From assembly GCA_002269645.1 (NCBI GenBank), contig NIVC01000423.1, positions 62,001 through 126,000 of the forward strand: a DNA stretch of 64,000 bases, written 5' to 3'. Position 1 is the first letter of the stretch. Each line of letters opens with the position of its first letter. This DNA is from Macrostomum lignano. Taxonomy: Eukaryota. This document shows, in pieces, positions 28,099-61,650 of the stretch. A model generated the notes under the pieces. It saw only the letters and a program-made list of their open reading frames with translations. It ran no database searches and was not told the DNA's origin. The translations under genes were made by a program, and so were the position numbers.

Positions 28099-28220
28099 CT
28101 GCGCGTGAAGGCGGTGTGACGGATTTTTGTGGTGTTGAATTAATTGCGAACATTTTTATGGGCCTGACTTTTTCATATGCTCCTCATCCTCAGGCGCTTC
28201 AGACACTTCGATTGTCAAAA

Positions 28221-28790
28221 GGCGCCAATTCCAGGTGTCAGTTTGGATAGGGGCGCCTATTCCAGGTGTCAGTTTGGATAGGGGCGCCTATTCCAGGTGT
28301 CAGTTTGGATAGGGGCGCCATTCCAGGTGTCAGTTTGGATAGGGGCGCCTATTCCAGGTGTCAGTTTGGATAGGGGCGCCTATTCCAGGTGCCAGTTTGG
28401 ATAGGGGCGCCAGTTTCAGGTATCAGTTGGGAAGGGGGCGCCAATTTCAGGTGTCAGTAGATGGGGGCGCCAATTACAGATGTCAATAGATGGGGCGCCA
28501 ATTCTAGGTGTCAGTTGTGAGGGGGGCGCTAATTCCAGATGTCAGTTTGGATAGGGGGTCAATTCCAGGTGTCAGTTGTGAGGGGAGCGCCAATTCCAAG
28601 TGTCGATAGATGGGGGCGCCAATTTCAGGTGTCAGTAGATGGCGGCGCCAATTCCAGGTGTCAGTTGGGAAGGGGGCGCAAATTCCAAGTGTCAGTTGTG
28701 AGGGGGCGCCAATTTCAGATGTCAGTTTGGACAGGGGCGCCAATTCCAGGTGTCAGTTGTGAGGGGGGCGCCAACTCCAGGTTTCAGTAG
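28221..28790. repeat. ~31-bp minisatellite (TTCCAGGTGTCAGTTTGGATAGGGGCGCCTA) in FoxL1 intron
   Basis: Direct periodicity, degenerating to the right. Confidence 0.92.
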
Positions 28791-29734
28791 GCGGGGACGC
28801 CCATAATGCGTGTGTCGTGTTTGCCAAACTAAATTTCAAAACGAAGTCTTGAATTTCAATTAAAAGTTTACTGCGACTGCATCGGAAATCAAGTGGATGA
28901 AATATCCCATAAGGAAACACAACAATAACCCAGCCGTAATGTTTGAATCCAGTCATTCGGTTCTATCTGCACACATCTGCATGCATTAAGACTACACAGT
29001 GACACTTGAACTGCCCAATGTGGGGGCACAAGTCCATTGAGGAATTGCAAATCCCCCTGCAGGTTGTCAAGTGGCCTGGCAACCCCCCTCCAAAGCCCGC
29101 GGTCTGTAGGGATCCACCTGATATGGGATTATTATGCGTTGGTATAAACAAGAATCTCGATTCCATAATCTAAATCCCCAAGCCGGGATAATCCCTGTTA
29201 AATATATCAACGAACGCCGGCAAAACTAACCCTGAGGCCAAATGGTTATCCCATCACCCATGCAGCCTCCTGCATGCCGCAAATCTTCCCATATTACATG
29301 TTGACAGTCCGATAAATCCCCTCCCCCTACCCCTACCAGATTCGTTCGTTATTTTCAATTAGTCAGTCAAACATGTCAATCTAAACTGGCCCCATAGCCT
29401 GTATTCTATCTTCCTCAAACACCCTCTGGCAGTGCGGAATGCCACAGCCCGATTTTCAAGATCAGCAAGTCAGGATTTTCGTATCCGGGACTAAAAATGC
29501 AAAACGCCTTGAGGAGTTTCCGGCGCTATAATTTCCTAAACTGAATTTTGCCGGTGAAACAGCGTGAACAAAATTAAAATAGAAAGTGTGAACGCATTAG
29601 TTACCAACGTGAATGGGGGAAAAGGTAGTTTGATCGTTTTCTTATTAGTGTGAATACCTAAAGTGTGAATCACTAAATTTAAATGTGAATTTTACCAACA
29701 TTGTGAATACCATCAATTAGCAATGTTAATCCTA

Positions 29735-31508
29735 AACTCAACAGACGTGAATCCTAAACTCAAACAGCGTGAATGCTTAACTCAAACAGACATAAATCCA
29801 AAACTCAAACAGCGTGAATTCCAAACTCAAACAGCGTGAATCCAAAACTCAAACAGCGTGAATTCCAAACTCAAACAGCGTGAATCCAAAACTCAAACTG
29901 CGTGAATCCCAAACTCAAACAGCGTGAATCCCAAACTCAAACAGCGTGAATTCCAAACTCAAACAGCGTGAATCCAAAACTCAAACAGCGTGAATTCCAA
30001 ACTCAAACAGCGTGAATCCAAAACTCAAACAGCGTGAATCCCAAACTCAAACAGATGTGAATCCCAAACTCAAAAAGCGTGAATCCCAAACTCAAACAGA
30101 CGTGAATCCTAAACTCAAACAGCGTTAATCCCAAACTCAAACAGCGTGAATCCTAAACTCAAACAGCGTTAATCCCAAACTCAAACAGCGTTAATCCTAA
30201 ACTCAAACAGCGTTAATCCCAAACTCAAACAGCGTTAATCCCAAACTCAAACAGACGTGAATCCTAAACTCAAACAGCGTGAATCCCAAACTCAAACAGA
30301 CGTGAATCCCAAACTCAAACTGCGTGAATCCCAAACTCAAACAGCGTGAATCCCAAACTCAAACAGCGTGAATCCTAAACTCAAACAGCGTGAATCCTAA
30401 ACTCAAACAGACGTGAATCCCAAACTCAAACAGCGTGAATCCTAAACTCAAACAGCGTGAATCCTAAACTCAAAAAGCGTGAATTCCAAACTCAAACAGA
30501 CGTGAATCCTAAACTCAAACAGCGTGAATGCCAAACTCAAACAGCGTGAATCCCAAACTCAAACAGACGTGAATCCTAAACTCAAACAGACGTGAATGCC
30601 AAACTCAAACAGACGTGAATCCCAAACTCAAACAGCGTGAATCCTAAACTCAAACAGCGTGAATCCTAAAGTCAAACTGCGTGAATCCTAAACTCAAACT
30701 GCGTGAATCCTAAACTCAAACAGCGTGAATCCCAAACTCAAACAGCGTGAATCCTAAACTCAAACAGCGTGAATCCCAAACTCAAACAGCGTGAATCCTA
30801 AACTCAAACTGCGTGAATCCTAAACTCAAACAGACGTGAATCCCAAACTCAAACAGCGTGAATGCCAAACTCAAACAGATGTGAATCCCAAACTCAAACA
30901 GACATAAATCCAAAACTCAAACAGCGTGAATTCCAAACTCAAACAGCGTGAATCCAAAACTCAAACAGCGTGAATCCCAAACTCAAACAGATGTGAATCC
31001 CAAACTCAAACAGATGTGAATCCCAAACTCAAACAGATGTGAATCCCAAACTCAAAAAGCGTGAATTCCAAACTCAAACAGACGTGAAACCTATACTCAA
31101 ACAGCGTTAATCCCAAACTCAAACAGCGTGAATCCTAAACTCAAACAGCGTTAATCCCAAACTCAAACAGCGTGAATCCTAAACTCAAACAGCGTGAATC
31201 CTAAAGTCAAACAGCGCGAATCCCAAACTCAAACAGCGTTAATCCCAAACTCAAACTGCGTGAATCCTAAACTCAAACAGCGTGAATCCCAAACTCAAAC
31301 AGCGTGAATCCCAAACTCAAACAGCGTGAATCCTAAACTCGAACAGCGTGAATCCCAAACTCGAACAGCGTGAATCCCAAACTCAAACAGCGTGAATCCT
31401 AAACTCAAACAGCGTGAATCCCAAACTCAAACAGCGTGAATCCTAAACTCAAAAAGCGTGAATCCCAAACTCAAACAGACGTGAATCCTAAACTCAAACA
31501 CCGTGAAT
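29735..31508. repeat. 22-bp minisatellite (GTGAATCCCAAACTCAAACAGC), ~80 copies, in FoxL1 intron
   Basis: Direct periodicity. Confidence 0.97.
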
Positions 31509-31524
31509 ACCCATCACTGCTCAC

Positions 31525-31747
31525 CATTCAATGTGATCTTTCTGTCCGGAGCGCTTTTAATTGCCATGGCAATGAGAGCAATGTAAGAATAGGGCGGTTT
31601 TGGCGGACTTTCCATCCCGGAGGTGACACTGGTCAGCTCACCAGCCATCAAAGCTCGATAATAGCTGGCCATGGCGGCGGGATCTGGCTGATGCGGCTGA
31701 TGCTGCTGACCCAGGTACGATGGCGGAAAAGCTACGAAAGGATCCAT
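31525..31747 (-). CDS. FOXL1: Forkhead box L1, exon 1 (MDPFVAF...[26 protein letters not shown]); joined protein 403 aa
   Basis: Forkhead N-terminus [14 protein letters not shown]; donor GTGAGC phase 1 joins exon 2 exactly to give TLNGIYQF. Confidence 0.9.
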
Positions 31748-32229
31748 TTTTAATGATAACAAATAATTTTGTTTGAAACTTTCGCTAGAAGTTGCGACGC
31801 CAAACGAGATTTGCGATTGCGATTTTGATTGCGATTTTAAGAAAAAATAGATCAGCCAGAGCTGGGTCGGGGTTCGTCCCTCCACCGCCAACCCCCCCCC
31901 CCAGGACTGCTGGCTTCCTATTGGCTGGCGGAATGGGGTGGTGGTGACGCAGGTCCAATCCAATCCACTTGATTGTCAAGCATTTCCACACAAGGCTGGC
32001 CTTCTATGAACGAGCGGGAAGAGAGTGACAAAATATCGAAATTCGACTTCTTAAAATGATTATTTATGGCCTTCAAGCTAAAAATCGAAGGTAAAATTTT
32101 ATCGGACGGGAAGTTGTAAAAATTGTTTAAATATAAACTTTGCTCGTCAGGCTGGAAACTGCATTGGGCATGTCTGTCCAGCAACAGCATTCTATTTATG
32201 TTTGGTCTCCTTGTGTTTATTTCATTTCC

Positions 32230-40762: not shown

Positions 40763-42615
40763 AGGTGCTGGCGCCCCTGGTGCTGGAAATATTTTGCTCT
40801 GTGACTTGGAATTATGAGGACATTCAAGGGCGCTTGATTATGTTACGCGGACTATGTGTGCTATGGGTCTTGGCCTCACCGTGTGAGCTCAGTATTTACC
40901 TGAAGCAACAATTGTTAAAGGTGCTGCAGCTCAAGGTGCGGCAGATCGACCCTGTTTAGTGGGATTAAAATTCTTGCATTTTGTATAAATACAACATTCA
41001 GAAATGCATGTACAGTCACTGAATACACGGTGACTGCAGTATTTGGCTGTCTGTCTGTTTGCCAATAAACGGAACAGCTAACAAAGCCTTGAATCATTGT
41101 TGCTGAGCCAGTGTTTGACTTTAATTTTTCTCATTTCTCTCTGCCTCCGCTCAAAATGCATGCATAATTCTCAGGCAGAAATGACGATTAACTTTGTTAG
41201 AATTTGAACAAGCGATGATTATATTGCTGCAGCTGTGGAAGTGGCACATTTCGATTTCTCCAGCTTTCTGCAGTTTCTTCCTTCCGCGATCAGAATTTCT
41301 TTTTTTTTCATCTTTTGGTTGAAATTGGCCAAAGAAATTTTTGATGACTTTTTGCCACCCCGCAAACTGGGGGTGTTTGCTCAATATTTACCCTCCCTCT
41401 CGCTTATACAAGTTGCAGCGATATTTTTTCGCTTGCTCAATATTTGCATTCAGCAGGAAAAGCCAATTTTTGTATTTGGCTGAGAAAAACCTGCCAGGGT
41501 TTATAGATTGCTTGTAAGAACACTTTCCTCTCGGTTATTCTCTCCAAGGCAAAGCAATTTAATCGGAAAAGTGACTGTAAATGCGCTTGAAAAATCATTT
41601 GATTGCTACTGTTAGTAGTGTTATTAAGACCAGTTATCTATTTTGGTAGCAGAAATTAATCTCACTCTAGATTCCCGTCGGTGTACATCACAGTACAGTA
41701 TTTCAAGGCACAAACTTTTCAAAGTCGTAGAATTTCTATTTTGTTGATGTTTTCGAATTTCGACTAAAATAAAAGTGAAGCCAAAGTTTCCTGTATTATA
41801 CGAGCTAAATTTGCACTGGAATTGCTTGCTAGCTTCGTAATTGCTATTTTAAGAAAAAAGTGCTCTTACTCACGAGTCTTACAAAAAAAGTCAGAAAATA
41901 CTCGAGTTGGCGAGTTGCAACTGTAGGAACTTAATTATTTGCCAAAAGTCAGTACACAAAATTAACCTCAGTAATTTCCCGAAAGTAAAAAGGTTATTTT
42001 TACGAATTACATACTTTTCTTTTCGCCCTTTGCTTGGCGGCTTCGCTACACTTTCTAGTCTTTTCTAGTTCGCTCGCTCCACGATTTCCTATTTACGAAT
42101 GGAAATTTACCATCGGAATAGAATCAGTGAGTTTGCTTGGTGCGATTTCAAAAAAACAAGCACGTGGTGGATAACAGGTGAGAAAATTACTTTGGTTCCG
42201 CTACATAGGAATCCTAATGATTCAAACAGGGGGGAGCATGCAATCATGCAGTCACTCGCTGATTGAGTGATTTTGATGCTCTTTACGCCACCACACGAGA
42301 CACGCGCGTGCCTAAATGACCTTGGGAAAACCCCCTGCCCGAGCGCGAGAAGCAAGGAAAAGCTTTGGGTAATGTACACTTCAATGTGCACTTACAAGCG
42401 TGTGTATGAAGTTAACGCCCAAAATAGACAGGAAGGGTCACAAATATTCAAGGCCCCTCTCTCCCTTCAAGAGGCCAAGAGACCACGCGGCTGAGAACTG
42501 ACTAAACTGTACAGTGAAACATATAAAGCAACGAAACACTTGGGAGGAATTCCTCATTCCAAGTTCTGAAGCAAGCCAAGGAGGCAATTGTCGCAAGTTC
42601 AAGCAACAATCGACA

Positions 42616-42986
42616 ATGGCTTCAACGGGAGTCCTAGCAGACGATGAATCGCTCTCATCATCGCCAAGCTGCAATCGAGGTCGTCAGCGAACTATTCGCA
42701 TTGACGTAATTCTACTAGACGGAACTCAATGCCAGGTGTGCCTAGATTACCGAGCCAACGGCCAAGACTGCCTGGACAAAGTCTGTCAGTGTTTGGGCGT
42801 ATTCCACGAAGTCGATTATTTCGGCTTAACCTACTTCGGCGCCAAACGCGAGGAGCTGTGGGTTAATATGCGCAACCGTTTGTACCAGCAATTGCCAACG
42901 ACCCTGGCGCTTAACGGCGTCTATCGGCTTTATCTAAGAGTCAAATTCTATGTGCCGCCTCACATGATGCTCCACCAGGAGACCAG
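42616..42986 (+). CDS. MYLIP: MYLIP/IDOL E3 ubiquitin ligase (FERM+RING), exon 1
   Basis: ANGQDCLDKVCQCLGVFHEVDYFGL...LWVNMRNR...LRVKFYVPPH matches IDOL FERM F1 ([24 protein letters not shown]...LRVKFFVEPH); donor GTAAGA phase 2. Confidence 0.9.
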
Positions 42987-43052
42987 GTAAGAAACAAAGC
43001 ATACTTAACCATACAATTCGGTTTTTATATCAGTAGCCAGGCCGGGGATAGT

Positions 43053-43612
43053 GCAATTGAAATGGCGCCCCCACAATTGAAATGGCCCCCACAGATGAAA
43101 TGGCGCCCCCACAATTGAAATGACGTCCCCAAAAATGAAATGGCGCCCCACAGTTGAAATGGCGCCCCCACAATTGAAATGACGCCCCCACAATTGAAAT
43201 GGCGCCCCCACAGTTGAAATGGCGCCCCCACAGTTGAAATGACGCCCCCACAATTGAAATGGCGCCCCCACAATTGAAATGGCGCCCCCACAATTGAAAT
43301 GGCGCCCCCACAATTGAAATGGCGCCCCCACAGTTGAAATGACGCCCCCACAATTAAAATGACGCCCCCACAATTGAAATGGCGCCCCCACAGTTGAAAT
43401 GACGCCCCACAGTTGAAATGACGCCCCCACAATTGAAATGGCGCCCCCACAATTGAAATGGCATCCCCACAGATGAAATGGCGCCCCCACAATTGAAATG
43501 ACGTCCCCAAAAATGAAATGGCGCCCCCACAGTTGACATGACGCCCCCACAATTGAAATGGCGCCCCACAATTGAAATGGCGCCCCCACAATTGAAATGG
43601 CGCCCCCCTAAA
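43053..43612. repeat. 20-bp minisatellite (AATTGAAATGGCGCCCCCAC) in MYLIP intron 1
   Basis: Direct periodicity. Confidence 0.95.
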
Positions 43613-43690
43613 AATGAAATGGCAATGGGGCGTCCCCCACTGAAGAGTTCCGAGTCCTGACTCTTAACAATGTCTGCCCCGCTGACACAG

Positions 43691-44263
43691 GCACCAAGTT
43701 TACCTGGACGTCCGGAGTCGACTACTGGACAGACATCACTGGCTGCTGGACAAGGAGCTTCAACAAGGTCAAGGATCTCGGAGTCCAGATTCGGGCAGCG
43801 ACGCTTCGTCGTCATTCGACTTAGAGGACAACAGTCATGAGGAGCCTCTGGCAGCCCGACTGGCCGCTTTAATTGTCCAAGCAGATTTTGGCAGCGGATC
43901 CTTGAGCAGCAGCAACAGATTATGCCGACAAATCTTAAGCCGTCTGCTTGACTTCAACGATGAAGACAGCTGCTACAACGACAATGACAGCAGCGGCGGC
44001 AGCGGCGGCAGCTGCGGGACTGACAGTTTCAGGGAGGAATTCTTGGAATTGTGCAAATCTGCCATGGAGTATCACAATAAATTGTTGGAGTTGTCACCAA
44101 CGGCGGCAGAGTACAGGCTGTTACAGACAGCATCAGCTGGCTTGTCAATGTACGGCAGTCACTATCACGAGGCTAAGGATCATTTGGAGTCCAGACTCAA
44201 TGTGGCCGTTGGTCCCGACGCTGTTTGGCTGTGCCGCCCGGATGCTAAAACTGCATTCGAAAG
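43691..44263 (+). CDS. MYLIP: MYLIP/IDOL exon 2 (FERM F2 and start of F3)
   Basis: Acceptor CACAG, donor GTAGGT, 573 nt phase 2/2 open; LAALIVQADFG, AAEYRLLQ, YGSHYH, VAVGPD. Confidence 0.88.
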
Positions 44264-44583
44264 GTAGGTGTTTTTTCGGGGGGCCGATATGTTTCTTAAT
44301 AAGTTTTTTCACTCGAAATTTATAACTCCGATATGTATCGAAAATAGATAATAGCGTCTGAAATAATGTCTTGCCGATATGTATAGAAAATAATCAATGC
44401 ATCGATATTACATATCGATATAACTTCACGCCGATATGTATCGAAAATAGTTTTTGTGTCCGTCATAATTTCCTGCCGATGTGTATCGAAAGTAAATGTT
44501 TTTAAAACACTTATAATGTGCATGTTTAAATTAGCTACTTCGTTTTCTTTTAAACAAAAATCTATTAAATCTGTACGTTGCAG

Positions 44584-46840: not shown

Positions 46841-49149
46841 TTAATACACACTGTGTATATGCGTGTGCGATATCGTTTTTCTGCCGATATGTATGGAAAC
46901 AATTATAAATTGAATTCTTAATATCCAGAATGAAATGCACCGATATGATAAAGATTGATATAAATTTCAATTACAGTTTTCTGGTGAGGATTCTACAGAT
47001 ATGTTTCGAAGCATTTTATATAGTTGATTCTAAAAGTTCAGACTAGACTGCGCCGATATGTATCGAAACGAATTCAAACAATTAAAAAGGCGTGTTGAAG
47101 TTAACATCTATGTTATATGTGGCTCATATTAAATCTATCATTTAAATCAAATTAACTAAGGTCAACTCTAGTTAACCAATGGACTGATCCTTGATCTCTG
47201 GCGTAGCTCTGTGATGGATTTAATTTACACTTTCAGAATTTTGATTTCATAATTTTGTTGATTATGGTGTTAACCTTATATTTCTTATAATTTAGATTGA
47301 GTTAAATATTTGATTTCTTTCTTCAGTTGTAAAATTTTGTCGCATACACACAAGTAAATATTAAACCCTATTGTGGCTTTCTGGCAATACCTCGAACAAA
47401 TACCGTACACTTGAGTGCATTGTATGACTATGTAAATTTATTTAAACCTATACTCCCCGTGTACATGTAACGTGTATACTTTCTAATCTTTGTGCAAAAC
47501 AGCTGCAGTTTGCAAATTTGCAAGGTTTAAATAAAATGATTCACATTCGGATTTTACTGTAAATGTACATGCATGATAGATATCGATTTTTCATCTATGC
47601 TTTTAACAATTAACTTTGCTTTTGCACTGCTGCAAAAGTCTGTGCAGTGTATGTGCTGTCCAGCTTCGTGGAATTCTTTTAAACAGTGTTTTTAACAGCT
47701 AATATCCACTTTCATGTAAGTACACTTTGAACTTGTCGTTGACCTGCTGTCAAAAATATACACTATACAGTGAACATCAAAGTTGTAGTTTAACTGCATC
47801 GCCAGTTTTTTTCAACGAGAAAACATTGCGGTTTTCTGTCTGCTTACCGCTAAATTTCTGTAATAAGTTTACACGTATTCGATAATAAATTTTATTAAAA
47901 ACCCGAATTTGAAGCCGTATATATACGTATATGTACATGAATTTCACAGGTAAAATGACAATGACAAAATGTACAAATTTACTTGTAAAGAAAAAAATTT
48001 GTAAAATTTCGTGTGCGTTTGTGTCACGACCTGAATAAAGAATTTACAATGCTCTTAACTGTACGTACATATAGTACATGTCAACTCGTATTTTGTCTAC
48101 ACAGAGTATAAAGATAGTACACAGGTAGTAAACCGGACCAGAACCGGAAATTTGTTGAAGTTCGACACATGCAGATCGGTGTCTAACGCAGCCTGGTGTT
48201 TGAGTGTCATTAAAGCTTTTGGTTCCAGCTTACATGTACAGCTGATGTACATCAGTACATGTGCATGTACATGTTATTGGCTTTGACAGTTCGACGAGAT
48301 TTAAAAGGCACCAATATAGCTAGTCCGTTATCACAGTTATTTTACTCTGTCTTCAGTGTATTTTTTTCTACTGCAAGTGCACTTTTGCTGATGAGTAGGT
48401 GGGCTAGTATTGCTGCAGCTGCAGCAGCTAGCTGTGTGACGTGTACATGTACAGTGTAAGTGTACATGCTGTCAGTTGTCAACTCAAAATTAATCGTCTC
48501 GACTATATAGCCTCGGGTAGGGTTTTGTAATGAATTTGCGAAAGTTGTTAAAAAACAAAAATATCAGTTGTCTAAGGATGTTGTGATATTGTTCCATCCA
48601 TCCAGATTCGATTCAATACCTATAATCAAAATTTCAATTCAAATTTGCGCCAAAAGAAGCACTAGTTTAATAAACTACTTCAAAAATTTTATTATGCAAT
48701 ATAAGCTAAAAGTACTCACTTACTCTTTAATTAAATAAATTAAGTAAGCATTGCTTTTGATGTGTTTGAAGGAGTTTCCCTTGCAATTTTGTCATTTTTG
48801 CGAACCATATTTAAACGGTTTTTCAACCGACGACGTTAAAACAGCGCGGCTAAACGGGCTAATTGTGCTAAGTGCCTAGTCCTGAGTTGGATAGATTCAC
48901 ATCGTGGGGGGTTTGGCATGCCTATTGACTATTGATGACTTTCTATAAAATTTGCTGTTAGAAATCCAAGATCATCATCTAACTATCCACCCAACTGCGG
49001 GCACTTCATAATGACTTAGGCCCTAGTCAATGGCTCGTCTCGTTTGCTGATGAGTGATGAGTGATGACTGACTGATGAGCTTTGCAGGGTTCATTTATTA
49101 ACATTAAGCCTCTATTTGAGAATCAAATTATGATGCCTTTATGATTCAA

Positions 49150-49310
49150 AGTGGGGTTCAATTCCCGATCCCACTGGAACAATTTTTGTCCTTGAGCAAG
49201 ACACTTAGGTCCTACCGGCCTAACTCTGTCTGAGCTGCATTGCTTCAGTTTACCGACGAAACCGACACAGCTATCAAATGGGTAGCTACCAGCATTAGCT
49301 GGGGTAATTA
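49150..49310 (+). mobile_element. tRNA-derived SINE fragment (CORE-SINE-like)
   Basis: B-box-like GGTTCAATTCCC followed by TGTCCTTGAGCAAGACACTT and AAATGGGTAGC, resembling the CORE domain of MIR/AFC-type SINEs; no A box or TSD resolved. Confidence 0.5.
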
Positions 49311-50399
49311 TGGGTGTGTGTCGACCCCCCGCCTCCAGTTCTTGGACTAAACAGAAACAGCTGTGTGCAGCAGTGCAGTCTGTAGATGTGCCATGCAATA
49401 GCTGTGGCTTAGGCTTAGCTAGCTTACTAGGCCTAGGCCTACTTTTTATACCTTAACACTTTGAAGATAGCATCTATATATATTCAATCAAATTATAGAT
49501 TCTTTTTACTATTATCAAATATTTGTCAAATTCTATTTAGAAAAAGCATCTTTAAATCATTTTAGACAACATGGCTAACCAAGTTGCTTTTAATAGGCCT
49601 AGGCCTTAGCTTTTTGATATGATTATAGTGATAAGCAATACAAGGTTATCATTTGTATTTGATGGTTACAATAGAAATATTGAGTGTGTAGCTATACTAT
49701 AGGCAGGGTCTTAAGGGAAAAGTAGAATGAAACTAAAAAATAAGCTTTGCAAAAGAAAGAATATAATATTATAGACTTAAAAAAAATTACAGAATAAAAG
49801 TTGAACAAAGCTTAAGCCATATAATATATAACAAAGACAGAAAAACAATAGGCCCCTTAATGCATTAAAGCTCTAGGTTGAGCTCTAATGTATATATAAA
49901 ATATATTATATCCTTTTTATGGAACAAAAGGCATAGGGCCAATATTTGTGCATAGACATTAATAACAATCATAGAAAAACTGTTTAAACTATTGGAAATG
50001 ACTAAGGCCTATGCCAGAGTATTAGGCCTATATTAAGTAGGCCTACATAATTAAGTAAAATAGTTTTTGGTTATCTCAAGAATCCTTTTTGGAAAAATTG
50101 ACATTTTATAGGTGGCTATCTAGTATACTTTAAAAAGTGCACCTTTCTAATGTAGCATGGTATACCAAAAGGGTTAAAGGATAATATACCAGATAGGCTA
50201 AGGGGTAGCACTCTAAAAAATAGCACATGTTCGAAAAGTGGCACATAAAAGTAATAGCATATTTGAGGGTAACAAACATACTTATATTATCCTTCTAGCT
50301 GCACCAAATTGCAGAAGGCTTTATCATCTTCATAGTCTTGTAAAGCTACCAAATTTTCATAGTAATTTTAGTTAAAAAACATTTTAATAATAGTTAGTC

Positions 50400-52354
50400 T
50401 GCAGGCCAAGGTGAGAAGATATGCAAAGTTTAATATTTTTGACATAAATTTCTACTAAGTGAAAATAATAAGCTGCTTATTAGGCCTAGCTAAATTAAAA
50501 AAACTTAAGACTCTTAACTTATAAGAGGTCTTAGGCAAGTTGATCATTGTCAATAGGCCTACTATCATTTGTTTAATAAAAATCAGACAAATTGTATAGG
50601 ATTAAACTATTAAATATTAGCTGATAAAGTAACTTATTCATAGTTACTCTTGCTATTTACCCATTTGCCCCCTAGATTGCAGTATACAAATAGTATACAA
50701 AGTGTGTTGTGTTATGCTAAACACTAAGAATTTATTCCAATAGGGTCAAGAATTGTCTATAGTCAATCAAAGTAAAAAGTGATCAAGTGCATAGCATGTA
50801 TAGGTGCTATGACAGGGCAACATAGCCATATGCTCTTGGTTTAGACTTTGTTCTATAGCAATGGTACCTAGATCTTTATCTCTTGATTCTTCGTTGATAT
50901 TTGGAACTGAAGAATCAGTTCAGTTTCATAACCTTCCTCCTTGTCTGTGGCAAATGGAATAGCTATAGGTACTAGTTGATTTGTACTAGCTAGGTGCAAG
51001 CTTATTTTTAGCCAGAATCAATATAGTTATTTTGTCCTAAAGTCATTGAAATATGCTTGAGACCATGTCTATAAACCTAGTCTGATTCATTAGGTAGCTT
51101 TTTGACTTGTGAAAGAAAATGTGCCATCCAATAGACTAAGGCTAATTTTTTTGCACTGGGTTCTTTGCTAATACTAAGATATAAAATTGCATCCAAGGTC
51201 CAATTTAAAGATGCAGTTTCATAACCTTCCTCCTTGTCAGTGGCAAATAGAATAGCCATAGGTACTAGTTGATTTGTACTAGCTAGGTGCAAGCTCTTTT
51301 TAGCCAGAATCAATACAGTTATCTTGTCCTAAAGTCATTAAAAATATGCCTGAGACCATGTCTACAAACCTAGTCTGATTCATTAAGTAGCTTTTTGACT
51401 TGTGAAAGAAAATGTGCCATCCAATAGACTGAGGCTAATTTTTTGCACTAGGTTCCTTGCTAATGGGCCTACTAAAATATAAAACTGCATCCAAGGTCCA
51501 ATTTAAAGATGCAGTTTGGAAAGTCATAATATATAGTATTCCTATTGCACAAAAATAAACCTAGGTTATATAGCAGCTGCCTAGTTGATTGCTTTGTTAC
51601 ATAAAAATATGTAAGAGATTTAGCTAATGGGCCCACTATATAATTTTGTAATTTTTATATCAGGAAGGCTTCTGTGCCATTCAAAGTAGCCATTAGTAAA
51701 AAGCACCATGTCTAGCTCTTGGCTGTCTTGTCCCTAGGACCATTGGACAATTGCCCTGGGTCCAGGTGAATATGTAGCAGTTCTAGAACTGGCTAGTTTA
51801 GACAAGCAACAAGTTCTTGTGACTGCATAGCTTGCTATTATAGTGGCAGCTTAGCAGCATGGTCTTGTTTAGGTGGGAGATATCTATGGTGTCATCCAAC
51901 ACCTATATCACATCTAGGAGCTTGCATATCTTCTTTAAGTTGATTTTGGTCAGTAGCTTTTATCCAATTCTTGCAGGCACTTTTTGGTGTCCTATTTGAA
52001 CCAGTTGTCAAAGTTTTCTCAATAGTTTTCAAGTAATCATGATAATCATCATATAGAGTCAAGGATATAGAAGCAGGCTTGAAGTTGCAGATTATAACCT
52101 GCAACCTATTATAACCTAGACTGGGCTCATTTGCTTTTCAACTTCAGCTGCAACTCAATAGAGTGCTTGGTGAACTTCTGCAACAACTTGGTCAAGTGGA
52201 TAGTGCAGCCAATCAAGGCAGTTACAAATAAAACCAGCCAAAAAAGCCATTAAGCTGTGCATCTGGACAGGAAGATATGCAACAACCCATGGGTTCTTGT
52301 GAAAACAGCCAGCTCCTTTGTGGCACTAGTCATTGTATAGAGCTGGGCTTGCAT
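50400..52354 (-). pseudogene. DEG/ENaC (amiloride-sensitive channel family) pseudogene, copy B, many stops and frameshifts, internal ~295 bp tandem duplication
   Basis: Manual translation: FTRTHGLLHIF (HG motif), TM1 WLFWLVLFVTALIGCTIHL, VIICNFKP, SHLNKTMLLSCHYNSKLCSHKNLLLV*TSQF*NCYIF, IGWHIFFH, in canonical ENaC order; left boundary uncertain. Confidence 0.8.
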
Positions 52355-52544
52355 TTTTGTATCCTGTTTAATAGAATGCTGCAGATTTTATAATTCAATT
52401 ACTAACAAGATTTTTGCTAGTGTCTAGAAAATATCTAGTAGACTAAAGCTAATTGTTCTATAGTAGCTGTTTAATGGCTTTGCTATATAAGAATATGCAA
52501 AAGATATAGCCAATAGGCCAACTATACAATTTTGTAATTGCTAT

Positions 52545-52745
52545 ATTAGAAAGGCTTCCATGCCATCTAACATAGCTATCAGTGAAGTACACCATGTTCA
52601 GCATGCTGGGTGACTGCCATAGGTCTAGGTGGAAAGTTCAGCATTTTTAGAACCAGCTGGTCTAGACAAGCAAAAAGTTCTTATGACTGCATAGCCTGCT
52701 ATTATAATGGCAGCTTAGCAGCATGGTCTCATTGAAGTGGGACTT
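52545..52745 (-). pseudogene. DEG/ENaC pseudogene fragment, copy A (diverged paralogue of the extracellular segment)
   Basis: SHFNETMLLSCHYNSRLCSHKNFLLV*TSWF*KC*TF...LNMVYFTDSYVRWHGSL aligns with copy B at ~51660-51880. Confidence 0.75.
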
Positions 52746-53962
52746 TATTTATCCCATTATTAGGAGCTTTAAACAGGATATAATCAAGTAAAAAACATAG
52801 TTAATAATTAATTTATTAATTAAAAAACATATTACTATTAATTAGATTTCTTATATATAAAAGCTATTATTATATTATATCTTATATTCCATATGCAAAT
52901 GGCCTGGATTTGTTTCCACTTAGATTGTGCTAGCTTTTAAACAATCAAATAATAAATCTTTAAAGTGATTTTTTAGCTATTTAAAATCTCAAAAAATAAA
53001 TAAACTTATGTCTCTATTGCAGCCAATGGTTCATATTGTTTACAATGTCTAGCACAGATTGGCCCTTGGCAGTGCAATTGGGGTCTAGCACTGACATGAT
53101 TTAGCATGACAAAGGAGGGCATCCAGTGCAGTTCAGACCTTAGCTGCAATAGGAGCTCAAATTTAATGGTTTAAATTCTCTAACTCTTAATATTTTAGAT
53201 TTAAGATAAGAAAGACAAGATTAGGCTTAAGTTATTAGGCTTAAGAGCCTAAGTCAGTATAGTCCAAGGTAGAAATTTAATGAAAGGAAAAACTTGTATT
53301 TTTCAAAAATAATCTATCAGTGTAAATATGCTTTATCTAGAATTTTTTTCTAAGGTAATAAAAATTGGGAAAGTTATATCCCCAGACTTAATGCAAAAGT
53401 TACAAAACTTTTAAAGCTGCAATTTTGCTATGATAGTAGTTCTATCATTGTATATGCTTTATTTATCTGTATTTGCTATGATAGAAGTGGTAGATCAAAT
53501 TCTGAGTGGTAGAAGTGAAAGAGCATACCCTCATTCACAACCTTTTAAACAAGCTCTAGGAAATCACAATGATGAATAAGGTCACGAATTCATATAATCA
53601 TAGTCACAATTGTGATCAATTTAGTTACTAATAAACTTGTCTAACACTGCACTCTAAGTCGGGGGTCAGTAAACTTCAACCCACAGGCCACAGACAGCCT
53701 ACAAAGCCTGTCTATCTAACATTTGGGTCCTTTGAAACTTCACAATTGCAATCCAAGCTTTCTTAAGGTTTATGCCTTCTGAGATCTCTTCTCTCTTACT
53801 CTCTCCTCGTCTCAAGTGGTTTGGCAACAACAATTTACTGCTTTTTGTGCAATCGAGATTACAAACTAACTATTAAACAAAATAAATTACTTTTATATTT
53901 CATGAGCATAATTAAAGATTGTTTACTCAACTTGTTACTGACAGTAGCTATATTCTGCGGTA

Positions 53963-54574
53963 ATGTCCGAACAGGCAGAACAGAAGCCTCCCCAATCGGA
54001 GGAGAATTCCTCAGCAGATCCAGGCAGTTTGTACGAGGCCTATCAGAAACAGCAGCAGGACATTGAAAATGAGATAGCCATGGCTCAGGCCCTCATCACG
54101 CCAGCTATACCAACTAGCAACCTGAAGCAAGAGTACACAGACGACCCCGTATTCTTAGCCAAATGCGAGCAACTATGCGCTCGGTATCCTCGTCTGAGAC
54201 GAACCCGAGGCGATGGCAACTGTTTTTATCGAGGCTTCGGATTCGCTTATCTGGACCAGCTGCTTCAACAGCCGCCAGAAGCTGCTGCCAAACTTAAAGA
54301 AATCTGTCGACAAAGAAAAGACGCCATTATAGAGTTGGGCTATTCATCCGTTACGGTTGACGATTTTTACGACGCTTTCTCCGAACTAGTTGAGACTGTT
54401 GAGAGGCGAGAATGCTCTACTGCCAATTTGGAGTCCGTGTTTAACAATCCCGGTCAAAGCGATTATGTTGTTGTGTTCTTGCGCTTACTAGTCAGCGGTC
54501 ATTTGCAGACACATGCCGACTTCTTTCAGAGCTTTCTGGACGGAGAGCAAACTATTAAAGACTTTTGTGCTACG
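53963..54574 (+). CDS. OTUB1: Otubain deubiquitinase, exon 1
   Basis: LRRTRGDGNCFYRGFGFAYL (catalytic Asp/Cys), SDYVVVFLRLLVSGHL; donor GTTAGT phase 0. Confidence 0.93.
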
Positions 54575-54594
54575 GTTAGTGGTTTAGTGGAGGA

Positions 54595-55205
54595 GGATCG
54601 TCGAGAATGTCGGTTTTGAAGGATCCTTGGAATGTCGGTTTTGATGGATCCTTGAGAATGTCGGTTTTGATGGATCCTTGAGAATGTCGGTTTTGATGGA
54701 TCCTCGAGAATGTCGGTTTTGATGGATCCTCGAGAATGTCGGTATTGTTGTGTCTTTGAGAATGTCGGTTTTGATGGGGATTTTGACAATGTCGGTCTTG
54801 ATAGGGATTTTGGGAATGTCGGTTTTGATGATCCTCGAGAATTCGGTTTTGATGGATCCTTGAGAATGTCGGTATTGTTGGGTCTTTGAGAATGTCGGTT
54901 TTGATGGGGATTTTGACAATGTCGGTCTTGATAGGGATTTTGGGATTATCGGTTTTGATGGATCCTTGAGAATGTCGGGTTTTGATGGATCCTCGAGAAT
55001 GTCGGTTTTGTAGGATCCTTGAGAATGTCGGTACTGTTGGGTCTTTGAGAATGTCGGTTCTGATGGGGATTTTGGGAATATCGGTTTTGATGGATCCTTG
55101 AGAATGTCGGGTTTTGATGGATCCTTGAGAATGTCGATTTTGATTTTTCTTTGAGAATGTCGGCTTTGGTGGGTCTTTAGGAATGTCGATTTTGTGGGAA
55201 TCTTT
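54595..55205. repeat. 26-bp minisatellite (GAGAATGTCGGTTTTGATGGATCCTT) in OTUB1 intron
   Basis: Direct periodicity with variants. Confidence 0.92.
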
Positions 55206-55330
55206 AGGAATGGATGCTTCGGTTCTAATGAATGATTTTGTGGTCTTGTCAGTCGCCTAATTTTATCGCCCGCCTTCAAAGCGCAGCTCACCGTCTCTGA
55301 CCCTGCCAACTCGAACTCGAATCCCCGCAG

Positions 55331-55534
55331 GAAGTGGAGCCAATGCGTCACGAATCCGATCATATTCACATAATCGCTCTGACTCAAACCCTGGAGACCT
55401 GCATCGCGGTTGAGTACATGCACCGCGATGGCGCCGGCATCAGTCGGCACACGTTCCCGGATGACGGCCAGTCTGTTCCTGTGCTCACCCTGCTGTACCG
55501 GCCTGGCCATTACGATATTATTTATGATAGTTGA
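55331..55534 (+). CDS. OTUB1: Otubain deubiquitinase, exon 2; joined protein 271 aa
   Basis: EVEPMRHESDHIHIIAL...LLYRPGHYDIIY (catalytic His); acceptor CCCCGCAG. Confidence 0.93.
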   Translation, partial: EVEPMRHESDHIHIIALTQTLETCIAVEYMHRDGAGISRHTFPDDGQSVPVLTLLYRPGHYDIIYDS

Positions 55535-56177
55535 ATTGTGCTTGACTTGGTCCGCTTGCTAACTGGACTCAATCGACCCATGAATTCTTTACAATATTGA
55601 ATATTGAAGCATTAAGTATGAATTAAAATCTAGCAGTTCTCTTAAGAGTTATCTACTTGTCCAATTTAAGTTAGAAATATAAAATATTCGAAATTCAAAT
55701 CAATAAAAAAGTAAGTACTACTTATGCTAATTAGTAGTATAAGTCCTAATTTTACATCACTCCTTCAATAGAGCTACATAAAGAGAACTTCAAAGTGTAT
55801 GATTAGTTAATAATTGTTTTGCTTTCATCGAGTATCTAACTTATAATATTTAAAACTAAATTGATCATGCTCCCGTGTTTCTATCTTCAGTAGCATGTTT
55901 GGAGATGTGAGTAGCTTAATTTGAGAAGCGACTTTCAAATTAAAAAAAAATCTTTCCATGAGTTGCATATATATAGCTATGCGGCTTTTGTTTTGCCTTT
56001 TGATGTCATTCTCTACGCTGTGTTAAGTAGTATGATTTGTTGTTTGTTTTCATAATTATACTTGTCTTTGCAAACCTACCTGAGGAAATCCATTCGAATA
56101 TCAACCAAGTATTGTTCCACTGAAAATTGACGTTTTTTGATATGGTAAACCGGGTAATTGGGACATAGGCTCGGAGG

Positions 56178-57925
56178 GCAAATGGGAAGAAGGATCGGAA
56201 GGTAAATGGGAAGAAGGATCGGAGGGTAAATGGGAAGAAGAATCGGAGGCTAAATGGGAAGAAGGATCGGAGGGTAAATGAATGGGAAGAAGGATCGGAG
56301 GCTAAATGGGAAGAAGGATCGGAGGGTAAATGAATGGGAAGAAGGATCGGAGGGTAAATGAATGGGAAGAAGGATCGGAGGCTAAATGGGAAGAAGGATC
56401 GGAGGGTAAATGAATGGGAAGAAGGATCGGAGGGTAAATGGGAAGAAGGATCGGAGGGTAAATGGGAAGAAGGATCGGAGGGTAAATGGGAAGAAGGATC
56501 GGAGGGTAAATGGGAAGAAGGATCGGAGGGTAAATGAATGGGAAGAAGGATCGGAGGCTAAATGAATGGGAAGAAGGATCGGAGGCTAAATGGGAAGAAG
56601 GATCGGAGGGTAAATGGGAAGAAGGATCGGAGGGTAAATGAATGGGAAGAAGGATCGGAGGCTAAATGGGAAGAAGGATCGGAGGGTAAATGAATGGGAA
56701 GAAGGATCGGAGGCTAAATGGGAAGAAGGATCGGAGGCTAAATGGGAAGAAGGATCGGAGGCTAAATGAATGGGAAGAAGGATTGGAGGCTAAATGGGAA
56801 GAAGGATCGGAGGGTAAATGGGAAGAAGGATCGGAGGGTAAATGGGAAGAAGGATCGGAGGGTAAATGGGAAGAAGGATCGGAGGGTAAATGAATGGGAA
56901 GAAGGATCGGAGGGTAAATGAATGGGAAGAAGGATCGGAGGCTAAATGGGAAGAAGGATCGGAGGCTAAATGGGAAGAAGGATCGGAGGGTAAATGAATG
57001 GGAAGAAGGATCGGAGGGTAAATGGGAAGAAGGATCGGAGGGTAAATGGGAAGAAGGATCGGAGGGTAAATGAATGGGAAGAAGGATCGGAGGCTAAATG
57101 GGAAGAAGGATCGGAGGCTAAATGGGAAGAAGGATCGGAGGGTAAATAGGAAGAAGGCTCGGAGGGTAAATGGGAAGAAGGCTCGGAGGGTAAATGGGAA
57201 GAAGGATCGGAGGGTAAATGGGAAGAAGAATCGGAGGGTAAATGGGAAGAAGGATTGGAGGGTAAATGGGGAGAATGATCGGAGGGTAAATGAATGGGAA
57301 GAAGGATCGGAGGCTAAATGGGAAGAAGGATTGGAGGGTAAATGGGAAGAAGGATCGGAGGGTAAATGGGAAGAAGGATCGGAAGTTAAATGGGAAGAAG
57401 AATCGGAGGCTAAATGGGAAGAAGGATCGAAGGGTAAATGAATGGGAAGAAGGATCGGAAGGTAAATGGGAAGAAGGATCGGAGGGTAAATGGGAAGAAG
57501 GATCGGAGGGTAAATAGGAAGAAGGATCGGAGGGTAAATGAATGGGAAGAAGGATCGGAAGGTAAATGGGAAGAAGGATCGGAGGGTAAATGAATGGGAA
57601 GAAGGCTCGGAGGGTAAATGGGAAGAAGGATTGGAGGGTAAATGGGAAGAAGGATCGGAGGGTAAATGGGAAGAAGGATCGGAGGGTAAATGGGAAGAAG
57701 GATTTGAGGGTAAATGGGAAGAAGGATCGGAGGGTAAATGGGAAGAAGGATCGGAGGGTAAATGGGAAGAAGGATCGGAGGGTAAATGGGAAGAAGGATT
57801 GGAGGGTAAATGGGAAGAAGGATCGGAGGGTAAATGGGAAGAAGGATCGGAGGGTAAATGGGAAGAAGGATCGGAGGGTAAATGGGAAGAAGGATCGGAG
57901 GGTAAATGAGAAGGATCAGAGGGTG
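56178..57925. repeat. 24/28-bp purine-rich minisatellite (GGAGGGTAAATGGGAAGAAGGATC)
   Basis: Direct periodicity, occasional AATG insertion. Confidence 0.96.
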
Positions 57926-58424
57926 AATTAATCGAAATCCCCATACCTCGCCGGTCTCAAGTGGCCAGTCAAGTCAGGTCCTGGATGAGCACGCGACAGG
58001 AAATCAGTTATCTAAAAAATATCTATATGTTCATATTACCGAGTGCTGCAAGCATATAACGCGTATAATTTCATATGGTTTGACTTCTATTCCCGCTTCC
58101 ACTCGGGATTATTGTTGTTTAGGATAATTATATATATGCTTACTATTAGCAGGACAGATGATTGTTAATCTAGTGCTCTCAGCTAATTGAATTTGGGTAT
58201 TTTTGAGTCTATCGTGTGTTGGGTAGAATCAACGATTCCTGCAGGATCCGGGATCAAGGATTGAAAAGTTTTTTGGTGCTCGCATGTGGGGCACTCGGGT
58301 TGCATGAGACGGGATCTGCGTGATTTTATGGTGTCTCAGTCAGTAGCCAAGAGGCATCCCGCGGTGGATGGCTGATGTCAGAGCTTTGGGATTTCTAAAT
58401 ACCATTTAACAGCGAAGCCGGATG

Positions 58425-59390
58425 CCTTAATTTCATTAGACATAAACTTCAAAAGACCTTAATTTCAGTAAACCTAAATTCCATAGGACCTAAATTCCAT
58501 AGGACCTAAATTTCATTAGACCTAAATTCCATAGGACCTAAATTTCATTAGACCTAAATTCCATAGGACCTAAATTTCATTAGACCTAAATTCCATAGGA
58601 CCTAAATTTCATTAGACCTAAATTCCATAGGACCTAAATTTCATTAGACCTAAATTCCATAGGACCTAAATTTCATTAGACCTAAATTCCATAGGACCTA
58701 AATTTCATTAGACCTAAATTCCATAGGACCTAAATTTCATTAGACCTAAATTTCATAGGACCCAAACTCCAAAAGTCCTAAATTTCAGGGGAGCTAATTT
58801 TCATGAAACCTAAATTTCAGTAGACCTAAATTTCAAAGGAACTTAATTACATAGGACCTAAATTTTACAGACCTAAATTTCATAGGACCCAAACTCCAAA
58901 AGACCTAAATTTCAGGGGAGCTAATTTTCATGAAACCTAAGCTTCATAAGACCTAAATTTCAAAAGACCCAAACTCCAAAAGACCTAAATTTCAGGGGAG
59001 CTAATTTTCATGAAACCTAAGCTTCACAAGACCTAATTTTCAAAGGAACTAAATTACATAGGCCCTAAATTTTATCACCTAAATTTCATAGGACCTAAAT
59101 TTCATTAGACCTAAATTCCATAGGACCTAAATTTCATAGGACCTAAATTTCATTAGACCTAAATTTCATAGGATCCAAACTCCAAAAGACCTAAATTTCA
59201 GGGGAGCTAATTTTCATGAAACCTAAGCTTCATAAGACCTAAATTTCATAGGACCCAAACTCCAAAAGACCTAAATTTCAGGGGAGCTAATTTTCATGAA
59301 ACCTAAGCTTCATATAAGACTTAAATTTCGTAAGATCTAAATTTCATAGGACACAATTTCATAAGAACTTAATTTGATTAGACCTAAACT
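58425..59390. repeat. 16-bp-based composite satellite (GACCTAAATTTCATAG) with ~80-bp higher-order blocks
   Basis: Direct periodicity. Confidence 0.9.
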
Positions 59391-60581
59391 TCTTCATGAG
59401 ACCTAAATGTTTGTCTTGCGATAAAAGCGCCTGGATGTCTGGGTTAATCCATGGGTTTGGATTGAATATCGATTGAAGTGATCGATAATTATGTATAAAT
59501 ATAATTAATTTCAGCCAATCATTGCTGCAATCCATGTCTCTATAATAGAGTCCTTGCACTCGGAGTCTATGGAGCAGAAATTGCTATACTCTTGCTCATC
59601 TCAAAAAGTTTTTGCTTCTTTCTGCTCAAAGCTTTCTCTCACTGCGAGCTCCCTGCAGCTTCTGTTGTCCATAAACTGATTTTTATGGCCCAGCACTTAG
59701 CCAGTTTTATATGCCGGATAGGTGGCCTCTCTGCTTTTAAGTGGCCTCTCCAAACTCGCTTTCTGTGTCCCACTTCTCAACCTTGTCTCTCCTCCCCGGG
59801 ACCATTGTCTTGTGACCCCGGGCTGGCTTTGGGGATTAACCTGAGTGGCCACGCAATGCTTGTGCAAATCATCCACTTTCTGGAGTGAATCAGGCTTATA
59901 AACGAGATTTATTATTGACTGGCTTGAAAACCAAATTCTCTCTGAATGATTCTCAAATAAATTCCCCTGAAAATTAATGCCTAAATTCTCTCAAAGATTT
60001 CCGCCTAAATTTCCCTCTTAGATTCCCGCCTTAATTCTCCAACTATAAGCGTATTACTCCTAACACAAACGCAGTTTATTTGCAACAGTTTCCACTCCAG
60101 AACTCTATAGCTAAGGACGTTTGAATTTTAGTATTCCTTGTATACTTGAGCTCTTGACAAGAAGAGCCCACCAGTCCAAGATGGAATGCACAAGTGTCCC
60201 GCACATGTATATAGAAATTTTTCATATTGACTTTCCTCTTGCCACACTTCACATTCGCTTGAGTGCGCCCGGGAAGTCTATCAGGGAGTGAAGCTGAGAA
60301 TTCAGGATGAGGAGATGATGAGGATCAGGGGTGTGAGCCGCTATTGAGGAAGATTGAAGTCAAATACACTTCAACAATAATTGAGATTCGGTGAGCTACC
60401 CATCTGTTTACTGGGCTAAATTGTGCCAATTTTGCTATGCAAATGCTTCAGATGCTGTGTGCAGACTGATGCGAGGGCTGTTTGTGTTCAGCTCACTGAT
60501 CATGGCTGTGCTGCAGTGCTGTGCCACTCACTTCCCTGATTGTTCGATTGTGATCAGCTTTCGCTGACTGGGTTCTTATCT

Positions 60582-60597
60582 GACTGACTGACTGACT

Positions 60598-60629
<32 letters not shown>

Positions 60630-60711
60630 CTAAGACAGACAGACAGACAGATAGATAGATAGACAGGCAGACAGACAGACAGACAGACAAACACTAAGAC
60701 AGACAGACAGA
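60582..60711. repeat. (GACT)/(GACA)/(GATA) microsatellite
   Basis: Direct. Confidence 0.92.
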
Positions 60712-61650
60712 AAATAACTCTGAAGAGTTAAAATACAGCCGCGTATTTGCAGTTTAAAGTTTACTGTTGTCCCCAGCCTTTTCTCCTAGAAGCAGCAGCA
60801 GCCGCAAGCAAAACTCAATCAAGCAGAACAACGCCAGCGAAAGCAGGTAAAATCCTGCAGCTCTCTCTCAGAAATATTTCACTCTGCAGTAAAACAAAAC
60901 TTGACACAAGCCTCCGGCAGCTCACTGCACAGCGTCCCTCCTGCTCGCAAAGTCAATTCAATTCACTTTGCTCAACTGGCTGTGAAAGCGAAACAGCGCG
61001 TAACGGTGAGAAAAAACGCAGATATTGTATAGGGGTGCCTGTAAAATAAAGAGTGAAACAGATCTGCATCAGTGAATCTGCCCGATGTCAGGCAGTCTTC
61101 AAAACATGCTCCATGATTGTCTGCTTGCTGACAAACTGCTGCAAGACACTTCTGCTGCTGCTCCAGTCTCGAATGTTGATTTTTTGCTCTGCTACATGTA
61201 AGTTTTTGCGAGTTGCGCTGTTGTCAGATGCAGCGAAAAAAACCAAAAATGCTTTTGTTGCAGGCTCTGTAGAAACTTCTGCTATAGCTGAATGCGGCTC
61301 TTAGCTTCTAATATCAGGTTCATAATCTGTGTGCCATGGAGACCCTTTTGAACGAGACGTCTGGAGAGTTTGTGGAGCCTTGTTGACGTAGGCACGTGTT
61401 GTGGCATGGCAATCACTAGAAGAAGCTGCTTCCAGATTCTTGCACAAGGCTGTCCCTGGTGTCGACTGTCACAAATAACTCCATCACTTGTTGAGAATAC
61501 CTGCACCGTGACTGGACGCCTGTATGTCTGGTCTACCAATTCAATCAGGTATCAGCTCAATTGCAGACAAAGGGGGTGAGTTCTAAGTTATTGCTGCTGC
61601 GCTTCACCGTTACAGACGCATAGGCAGGGGGCAATATAGGCTGGCAAAAA

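Follow-up and report, generated by a model that had tools for sequence, protein, structure and literature searches.

A tandem duplicate and the cytosine-hypermutated relic island that surrounds it in the genome of Macrostomum lignano

In this study, a 64,000-nt stretch of the Macrostomum lignano genome (C423:62001–126000, contig NIVC01000423.1; hereafter the window, in whose coordinates positions are given unless another contig is named) was analysed, starting from a tandem duplicate of two units, A and B, which a preliminary description had placed at 50921–51517 and had read as a record of cytosine loss. The analysis confirmed the duplicate, which is of an ordinary kind; of greater weight is the island around it, in which relics of repeats and of a gene are hypermutated at cytosine. 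The region is present in the assembly as three colinear copies, C423, C106 and C424, and the last two served as subgenome homologues. According to a later paper, 69.6% of the M. lignano assembly is present as three paralogous copies (subgenomes S, L1 and L2) with a single-nucleotide polymorphism divergence of approximately 2.2%.

The island is a CpG desert with a GC content of 33.4%. It contains 2 CpGs (at 50232 and 50892), and its observed/expected (o/e) ratio is 0.02 for CpG and 1.81 for GpC. CpG o/e is near 1 over most of the window, and other AT-rich non-repeat 500-bp windows within the 64 kb have a median of 0.76. CA and TG were found in the desert at o/e 1.07–1.27; CpG is depleted locally relative to comparable DNA, with the products TpG and CpA present, as methylation-driven decay would leave it. 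CpG-normal DNA from 53585 onwards, approximately 380 bp upstream of the ATG of an otubain gene, forms the right boundary. The desert consists of relics of the 3′ end of a Ty3/gypsy pol gene, other repeats, and fragments of a DEG/ENaC pseudogene, the GC-rich relatives of which are located elsewhere in the genome. The features are as follows.

49331–53584: CpG desert, 4254 bp, corresponding to C423:111,331–115,584, with its homologues at approximately 93.5–97.8 kb of C106 and 151.7–155.6 kb of C424
49641–50083, minus strand: post-pol/3′ terminal relic of the same retroelement as the Pol relic, matching 1798–2190 of locus L005
50083–50680: nested dispersed repeat interrupting the retroelement relic, with relatives at at least 6 other loci that are also CpG-free
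50776–51014, minus strand: C-terminal relic of a Ty3/gypsy-type Pol (amino acids 514–591 of the L005 open reading frame), running leftward out of unit A
51215–51325, minus strand: Pol relic in unit B (amino acids 510–546 of the same frame)
51154–51219: motif of a short dispersed repeat, located at the unit's 3′ end and found again at 51446–51569, with relatives in AT-rich, CpG-poor loci (L010–L030)
51726–52369, minus strand: relic of DEG/ENaC (Pfam ASC) exon 1, a pseudogene with 75–79% identity to GC-rich paralogues (L046–L054)
52569–52742, minus strand: incomplete further copy of the ENaC relic, from an older direct duplication with a spacing of 864–886 bp

The Pol relic represents the last 80 or so residues of Pol, and its DNA (50748–51061) is approximately 70% identical to L005–L009, young gypsy copies which carry RNase H and integrase domains and have a GC content of 58% and a CpG o/e of 1.0 in the matched part; the mutual resemblance of these copies ends at approximately 2223 in L005 coordinates. 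The nine ENaC paralogues have open frames, the Pfam ASC domain, GC contents of 56–58%, a CpG o/e of approximately 0.8 and mutual identities of 91–99.5%. The ENaC relic has several in-frame stops, located where the family has W, Q or R codons, which fixes the polarity of the differences as loss of C in the relic. The reversed polarity, with the relatives having been enriched in GC, was rejected on the basis of these stops and because all nine paralogues are GC-rich.

Changes in the relics were counted over partial segments against the per-column majority state of each family, and a stricter set was formed from the invariant columns, at which the nine ENaC paralogues all agree. The ENaC relic displayed 101 GC>AT transitions, 4 AT>GC transitions and 21 transversions, and the Pol relic 63, 4 and 17, respectively; every CpG of the families was lost. 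In the invariant columns, GC>AT changes were found at 85/313 sites (27%) versus AT>GC at 4/230 (1.7%). With CpG left aside, C>T still amounted to 40/218 (18%) versus 4/230 for T>C (odds ratio 12.7, p=1e-9), and transversions affected 4.5% of GC sites versus 0.4% of AT sites. The pooled C>T rate per cytosine was 56% at CpG (no CpG dinucleotide being left), 33% at CpA, 26% at CpT and 17% at CpC. The difference between CpA and CpC was significant (p=0.002), CHG and CHH sites (H = A, C or T) behaved alike, and the effect of the 5′ neighbour was not significant. Both strands were affected, with C>T : G>A counts of 50:51, 32:31 and 26:38, and the changes of the two strands were interleaved; runs tests revealed no significant strand clustering overall, either for the old changes (p=0.79, 0.99 and 0.08) or for the recent ones (p=0.047, 0.87 and 0.63). 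As shown by this comparison with the GC-rich families, the island has lost all of its CpGs and approximately 17–33% of its non-CpG cytosines by C>T change on both strands, in the order CpG >> CpA > CpT > CpC.

Almost all of the relic changes are common to the three subgenome copies and also to units A and B, indicating that the bulk of the loss predates both the subgenome split and the duplication. What the duplicate records is thus the tail of the process. In the older ENaC duplicate (51585–51878 versus 52471–52742, 77–86% identity), 14 GC>AT transitions are common to both copies and each copy has 12 of its own; the process thus ran over an extended period, before and after that duplication. 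Approximately 2.2% of the AT sites of the ENaC relic have changed in total, versus approximately 1.5% per lineage since the subgenome split. With so few changes at AT sites, cytosine loss must have been relatively much faster in the early phase than now.

CpG-free intervals occur elsewhere in the genome too. At six other loci, DNA related to the nested repeat lies in such intervals, 0.5–1.9 kb long and with CpG-normal flanks, and at 11 column pairs these related copies display mixtures of TG, CA and TA, pointing to independent CpG decay in each copy. Other AT-rich, CpG-poor loci also exist and are built of moderately repeated elements; translated searches of these loci with Pol and long interspersed nuclear element (LINE) proteins detected no further relic. 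Within the window, a second small CpG-poor patch was noted at 12751–13500 (GC 23–25%, 0–1 CpG per 500 bp), outside tandem arrays.

Recent substitutions were obtained from a three-way alignment of the subgenome copies, in which singletons were polarised by majority; all of the three-way spectra rest on approximately 9 kb. The counts, with the ratio of transitions to transversions (Ts/Tv), were as follows.

49330–53585, desert: 244 substitutions in 4170 columns, Ts/Tv 1.54, C>T 5.9% per GC site, T>C 2.36% per AT site
48394–49329, adjacent CpG-normal intergenic DNA: 67 in 914 columns, Ts/Tv 0.63, C>T 4.35%, T>C 1.84%
55195–61092, downstream non-repeat DNA: 48 in 2886 columns, Ts/Tv 0.78, C>T 0.9%, T>C 0.6%

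In pairwise comparisons, Ts/Tv was 1.48–1.65 in the desert versus 0.69–0.79 outside (Fisher p=0.002–0.005). An equally strong transition bias in duplicates outside the desert, named beforehand as what would speak against the preliminary description, was thus not observed. The outside values, obtained between subgenome copies over 40764–62225, are unusually low for an animal and may reflect a real spectrum or, in part, assembly error. Divergence was 3.2–4.6% in the desert and 4.1–5.3% in the neighbouring intergenic DNA. Recent C>T in the desert amounted to 7.3% at CpA, 5.2% at CpT, 3.7% at CpC and 3/8 at CpG, and the GC content of 33% is already near the equilibrium of approximately 27–29% implied by the recent rates. 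Creation of CpG from TpG was found at 3/534 sites, 4–5 times more rarely than T>C in other contexts (2–3%), which suggests that CpG-specific decay is still active in the island and that new CpGs are removed quickly.

The tandem duplicate itself lies in the middle of the desert. Global alignment, MAFFT alignment with the homologous copies and a repeat search bore out the preliminary description of a tandem duplicate of approximately 295 bp at 50921–51517 with a few indels, resolved as follows.

50921–51213: tandem unit A, 293 bp
51214–51511: tandem unit B, 298 bp, carrying a 6-bp TGGGCC insertion
51512–51517: 6-bp direct repeat CAGTTT, which restarts the unit and also opens units A and B

The repeat search of the window gave unit spacings of 292–298 in head-to-tail arrangement; the listing of the window by Tandem Repeats Finder did not include a 293-bp period among its repeats. 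The duplication cannot be attributed to chance. The unit extends across the point at which the Pol relic is truncated and includes the adjoining short repeat. In C106 (95659–96263), the same two units were found, with eight diagnostic differences between A and B in common with C423 and private changes in each contig. In C424, a single unit is present with CAGTTT on both sides (GAAT CAGTTT before the unit, GATG CAGTTT GG at its end), and this bounding of an unduplicated unit indicates a microhomology-flanked duplication. Reduction of C424 from two units to one by deletion was rejected, since this predicts a chimera that is A-like on the left and B-like on the right; at 8/8 diagnostic positions, C424 shows the opposite arrangement, with the B state on the left and the A state on the right. 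As can be shown from the three copies, the A/B pair is a tandem duplication flanked by the 6-bp microhomology CAGTTT, which took place in the common ancestor of C423 and C106, with C424 keeping the single unit. It agrees with known duplications of this type, formed by replication slippage or template switching, in that a 6-bp direct repeat bounds the unduplicated unit, exactly two copies plus the repeat are present, and a single-copy allele exists. Nothing was found in which it differs from them; the duplication is an ordinary one.

Alignment of A with B, which are approximately 5% diverged, revealed 15 substitutions, namely 14 transitions and 1 transversion (A/T at 50946/51239), together with three 1-bp indels and the 6-bp TGGGCC insertion in B. 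The transition dominance in the preliminary description thus holds, with its count of 13 transitions and 1 transversion raised by one. In the context of the C-bearing allele, 6 transitions are at CpA, 8 at CpT and none at CpC or CpG; CpC is absent as described, and the proposed split of 7 CpA and 6 CpT needs correction. CpC accounts for only approximately 19% of the C sites of the desert, so that its absence here is not significant. Compared with the desert-wide 148:96, the 14:1 ratio differs at a nominal Fisher p=0.011. In C106, the two units differ by 7 transitions and 4 transversions, and the pooled 21:5 gives p=0.054 against the desert. The transition excess between A and B is weakly above background.

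With the single C424 unit and the orthologues in C106 as references, the A/B substitutions were polarised as follows.

GC>AT transitions: 9 (5 CpA, 4 CpT)
AT>GC transitions: 3
transitions of unresolved direction: 2 (homoplasies at 50964/51257 and 51057/51350)
transversions: 1 (A>T)

Per site, these correspond to roughly 4.4% of GC sites versus 0.8% of AT sites. Cytosine loss at CpA and CpT, as had been proposed, is dominant and outside CpG (9 GC>AT versus 3 AT>GC). The accompanying proposal, that this loss followed the exhaustion of CpG, does not fit, since an ancestral CpG at 51122/51415 can still be read in C106 unit B and in C424, the A lineage and the window's unit B having lost it in parallel. 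Six changes occur in the window's unit B alone, of which five are G>A and the sixth is T>C. When the GC>AT changes of the window (50921–51511) and C106 (95659–96263) were divided by strand, C>T on the plus strand prevailed in A-type copies and G>A in B-type copies (6:1 vs 0:5, Fisher p~0.015 in this post hoc comparison). Slipped-strand loops in a tandem duplicate would predict such an opposite bias; the older ENaC duplicate showed none (6:6 vs 6:6).

Grouping of the copies by rooted informative sites over 49641–52358 showed that the C423 copy goes with C424 to the left of the duplicate (up to approximately 50.1 kb, sites 10:1:2) and weakly with C106 to the right of it (from approximately 51.7 kb, 3:1:1). 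The local history includes recombination or assembly chimerism, that is, a recombinant haplotype or a chimeric scaffold, and the switch of sister copy near the duplicate makes the polarisation of the older A/B differences less secure. In C424 (153889–162694, homologous to 47941–51219), a stretch of approximately 3 kb is present in two copies that are identical over 2940/2940 aligned bases and flank a 2.47-kb element bearing a reverse transcriptase (RT; GC 55%, CpG o/e 0.84), inserted at the equivalent of 51088, inside the tandem unit. Either this duplication arose very recently by rearrangement or it is an artefact of the assembly. It spans the desert edge and was tried as a control for the substitution spectrum; with copies identical over 2940 bp it was uninformative. 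C106 has a specific insertion of 3.96 kb (98819–102782, between 48394 and 48406; GC 55%, CpG o/e 0.84) with a distant RT match, a young unmutated element lying approximately 0.9 kb outside the desert on its left side.

We consider deamination of 5-methylcytosine (5mC) in a silenced repeat island, with a probability of approximately 0.55, to be the process that shaped the island, as judged from its sequence. The silenced repeats would be methylated at cytosine in the germline by the DNMT1/DNMT3 system retained in M. lignano, deamination of 5mC would saturate at CpG and act more weakly at CpH, and the differences between A and B would be the tail of this process together with ordinary mutation. 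The order CpG >> CpA > CpT > CpC would agree with the flanking preference of DNMT3-type non-CpG methylation. In the genome, matches to PF00145 above the cut-off form three sets of loci with approximately three copies each, counted across the classes DNMT1, DNMT2 and DNMT3 together. Taken with the literature, in which M. lignano retains DNMT1 and DNMT3 and has low 5mC, these loci point to the presence of both maintenance and de novo C5 methyltransferases, as this type of decay presupposes.

The likeness to methylation-driven CpG decay, as known from vertebrates and from the mosaic methylation of transposable elements in invertebrates, includes complete local loss of CpG with gain of TpG and CpA, equality of the strands, a genome that keeps DNMT1 and DNMT3, and sharp island edges against CpG-normal DNA and a gene promoter. 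The island differs in depth, its o/e of 0.02 being far lower than is usual in animals, and in that approximately a quarter of its non-CpG cytosines are lost too; the C>T excess is not confined to CpG (40/218 vs 4/230, as above). It further differs in that young repeats and most of the genome are undepleted.

Several observations weigh against 5mC deamination. The 5mC level reported for M. lignano is low, and flatworms are not known to have substantial non-CpG methylation. In the young, 99%-identical gypsy copies, C>T was found at 3/460 CpG versus 8/1250 non-CpG sites, that is, without CpG hypermutability, and together with a CpG o/e near 1 in the window this implies that methylation of repeats is not general or not current. 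The raised transversions at GC sites of the relic (4.5% vs 0.4%) are not predicted by deamination of 5mC alone. In the recent phase, the per-site ratio of GC>AT to AT>GC is 2.4–2.5 in the desert and 2.3 in the adjoining CpG-normal intergenic DNA, and the recent counts rest on an assembly with known chimerism.

A second explanation, which we regard as unlikely, is enzymatic or homology-triggered deamination in one or several bursts, either resembling the repeat-induced point mutation (RIP) of fungi, mediated by DNMTs, or of the AID/APOBEC type. The loss of C in all contexts and on both strands, burst-like in that 2.2% of AT sites of the ENaC relic have changed versus 27% GC-site transitions, would be expected from it, as would the raised GC-site transversions by way of uracil excision; a TpA/ApT ratio of 1.11 and the opposite strand split of A and B also agree with it. 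Duplication was evidently not the trigger, since the ENaC paralogues and the gypsy copies are unmutated at identities of 91–99.5% and 99%. Also contrary are the undepleted CpA and TpG, with (CpA+TpG)/(ApC+GpT) at 1.45, the lack of a 5′ neighbour preference and of strand runs, and the absence of the opposite-strand pattern from the older duplicate.

Comparison with fungal RIP in particular shows both agreement and disagreement. In both, GC-rich repeats have become AT-rich relics with stop codons by C>T and G>A, which here dominate relative to the unmutated relatives (101 vs 4, 63 vs 4 and 85 vs 4); TpA/ApT is raised, and CpA > CpT > CpC. RIP is indicated by (CpA+TpG)/(ApC+GpT) below approximately 1.03 and TpA/ApT above approximately 0.89. 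The latter index passes at 1.11, the former fails at 1.45, and CpG rather than CpA is the strongest target. RIP mutates all long similar duplicates; here, in an animal genome, the nine ENaC paralogues are intact, the gypsy copies have 26 singletons in approximately 3.7 kb with normal CpG, and the 293-bp duplicate itself is only approximately 5% diverged. Nor were the single-strand runs typical of RIP detected by the runs tests. A fungal-type RIP trigger was rejected on the basis of the unmutated multi-copy families, the index of 1.45 and the lack of strand runs.

Editing of cDNA by AID/APOBEC was also rejected. The dense C-to-T change in a retroelement relic and the raised G:C transversions resemble its footprints; the changes are strand-symmetric (50:51, 32:31) instead of plus-strand G>A and lack the TC/CC preference or any other fixed 5′ context, and a host gene fragment that is not a retroelement, as well as the intervening DNA, is equally affected. 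Profile searches with APOBEC_N and NAD1 gave no match in the M. lignano genome, in a search run without positive control.

Neutral decay under a genome-wide GC>AT bias, with no special process and with the 14:1 ratio as a sampling fluctuation, is quite unlikely to account for the island. For the recent phase it has in its favour the near-equal GC>AT:AT>GC ratios of desert and neighbour, a desert divergence no higher than that next door, the lack of strand clustering among recent changes, and the mere 7:4 in the C106 unit pair. Against it, equally AT-rich neighbouring DNA retains its CpGs (median o/e 0.76 vs 0.0), the non-CpG C>T excess of the relic is 12.7-fold, versus the approximately 2.4 that fits the composition of local neutral DNA, and Ts/Tv in the desert is twice that outside (p=0.002–0.005).

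That A and B are subgenome alleles joined head to tail in the assembly, or differ by consensus errors, is very unlikely: 36% of Mlig_3_7 by length is reported to be chimeric between subgenomes, the sister copy switches near the duplicate and C424 has its perfect duplication of approximately 3 kb, but two separate contigs carry the duplicate, with eight diagnostic differences in common and private changes in each, its approximately 600 bp fall far below the length of the long reads used, and random errors in the consensus would lower Ts/Tv towards 0.5 rather than raise it to 14:1.

The rest of the window has the following genes.

15986–18978, plus strand: thioredoxin-domain protein
27110–31975, minus strand: forkhead transcription factor, two exons
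42502–44267, plus strand: FERM-domain protein
53963–54619, plus strand: otubain (OTUB1-like), first coding exon

A non-LTR (long terminal repeat) retrotransposon of the LINE class is located at 1–3063, with a GC content of 66%, a CpG o/e of 1.09, long open frames, an RT domain and a weak, sub-threshold endonuclease match; its normal CpG content contrasts with the relics of the desert. Minisatellite arrays with periods of 3–34 bp, each up to 1.8 kb long, make up 24.4 kb (38%) of the window; their units are nearly all different, and they lie between and within genes.

In the searchable literature, we did not find a cytosine-hypermutated relic island of this kind described for flatworms or other animals, and a search for RIP-like signatures in animals returned fungal work only. 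It is conceivable, though doubtful, that M. lignano is a bilaterian with present or recent hypermutation targeted to chromatin domains, in all C contexts and on both strands, by way of dense CpG and CpH germline methylation or of a deamination analogous to RIP. Selected islands of repeats and pseudogenes would thereby become AT-rich relics free of CpG, with multi-copy genes and young repeats left unaffected, and the opposite strand bias of A and B would be a trace of single-strand exposure, for example in slipped-strand loops. The tandem duplicate alone adds little: from it the tail of the process can be dated, and the bulk is seen to be earlier. The islands provide concrete loci at which to ask whether M. 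lignano methylates silenced repeats, also outside CpG, and whether it still does so. If the non-CpG part of the loss does not come from methylation, they would represent an animal counterpart of the repeat hypermutation so far known from fungi.

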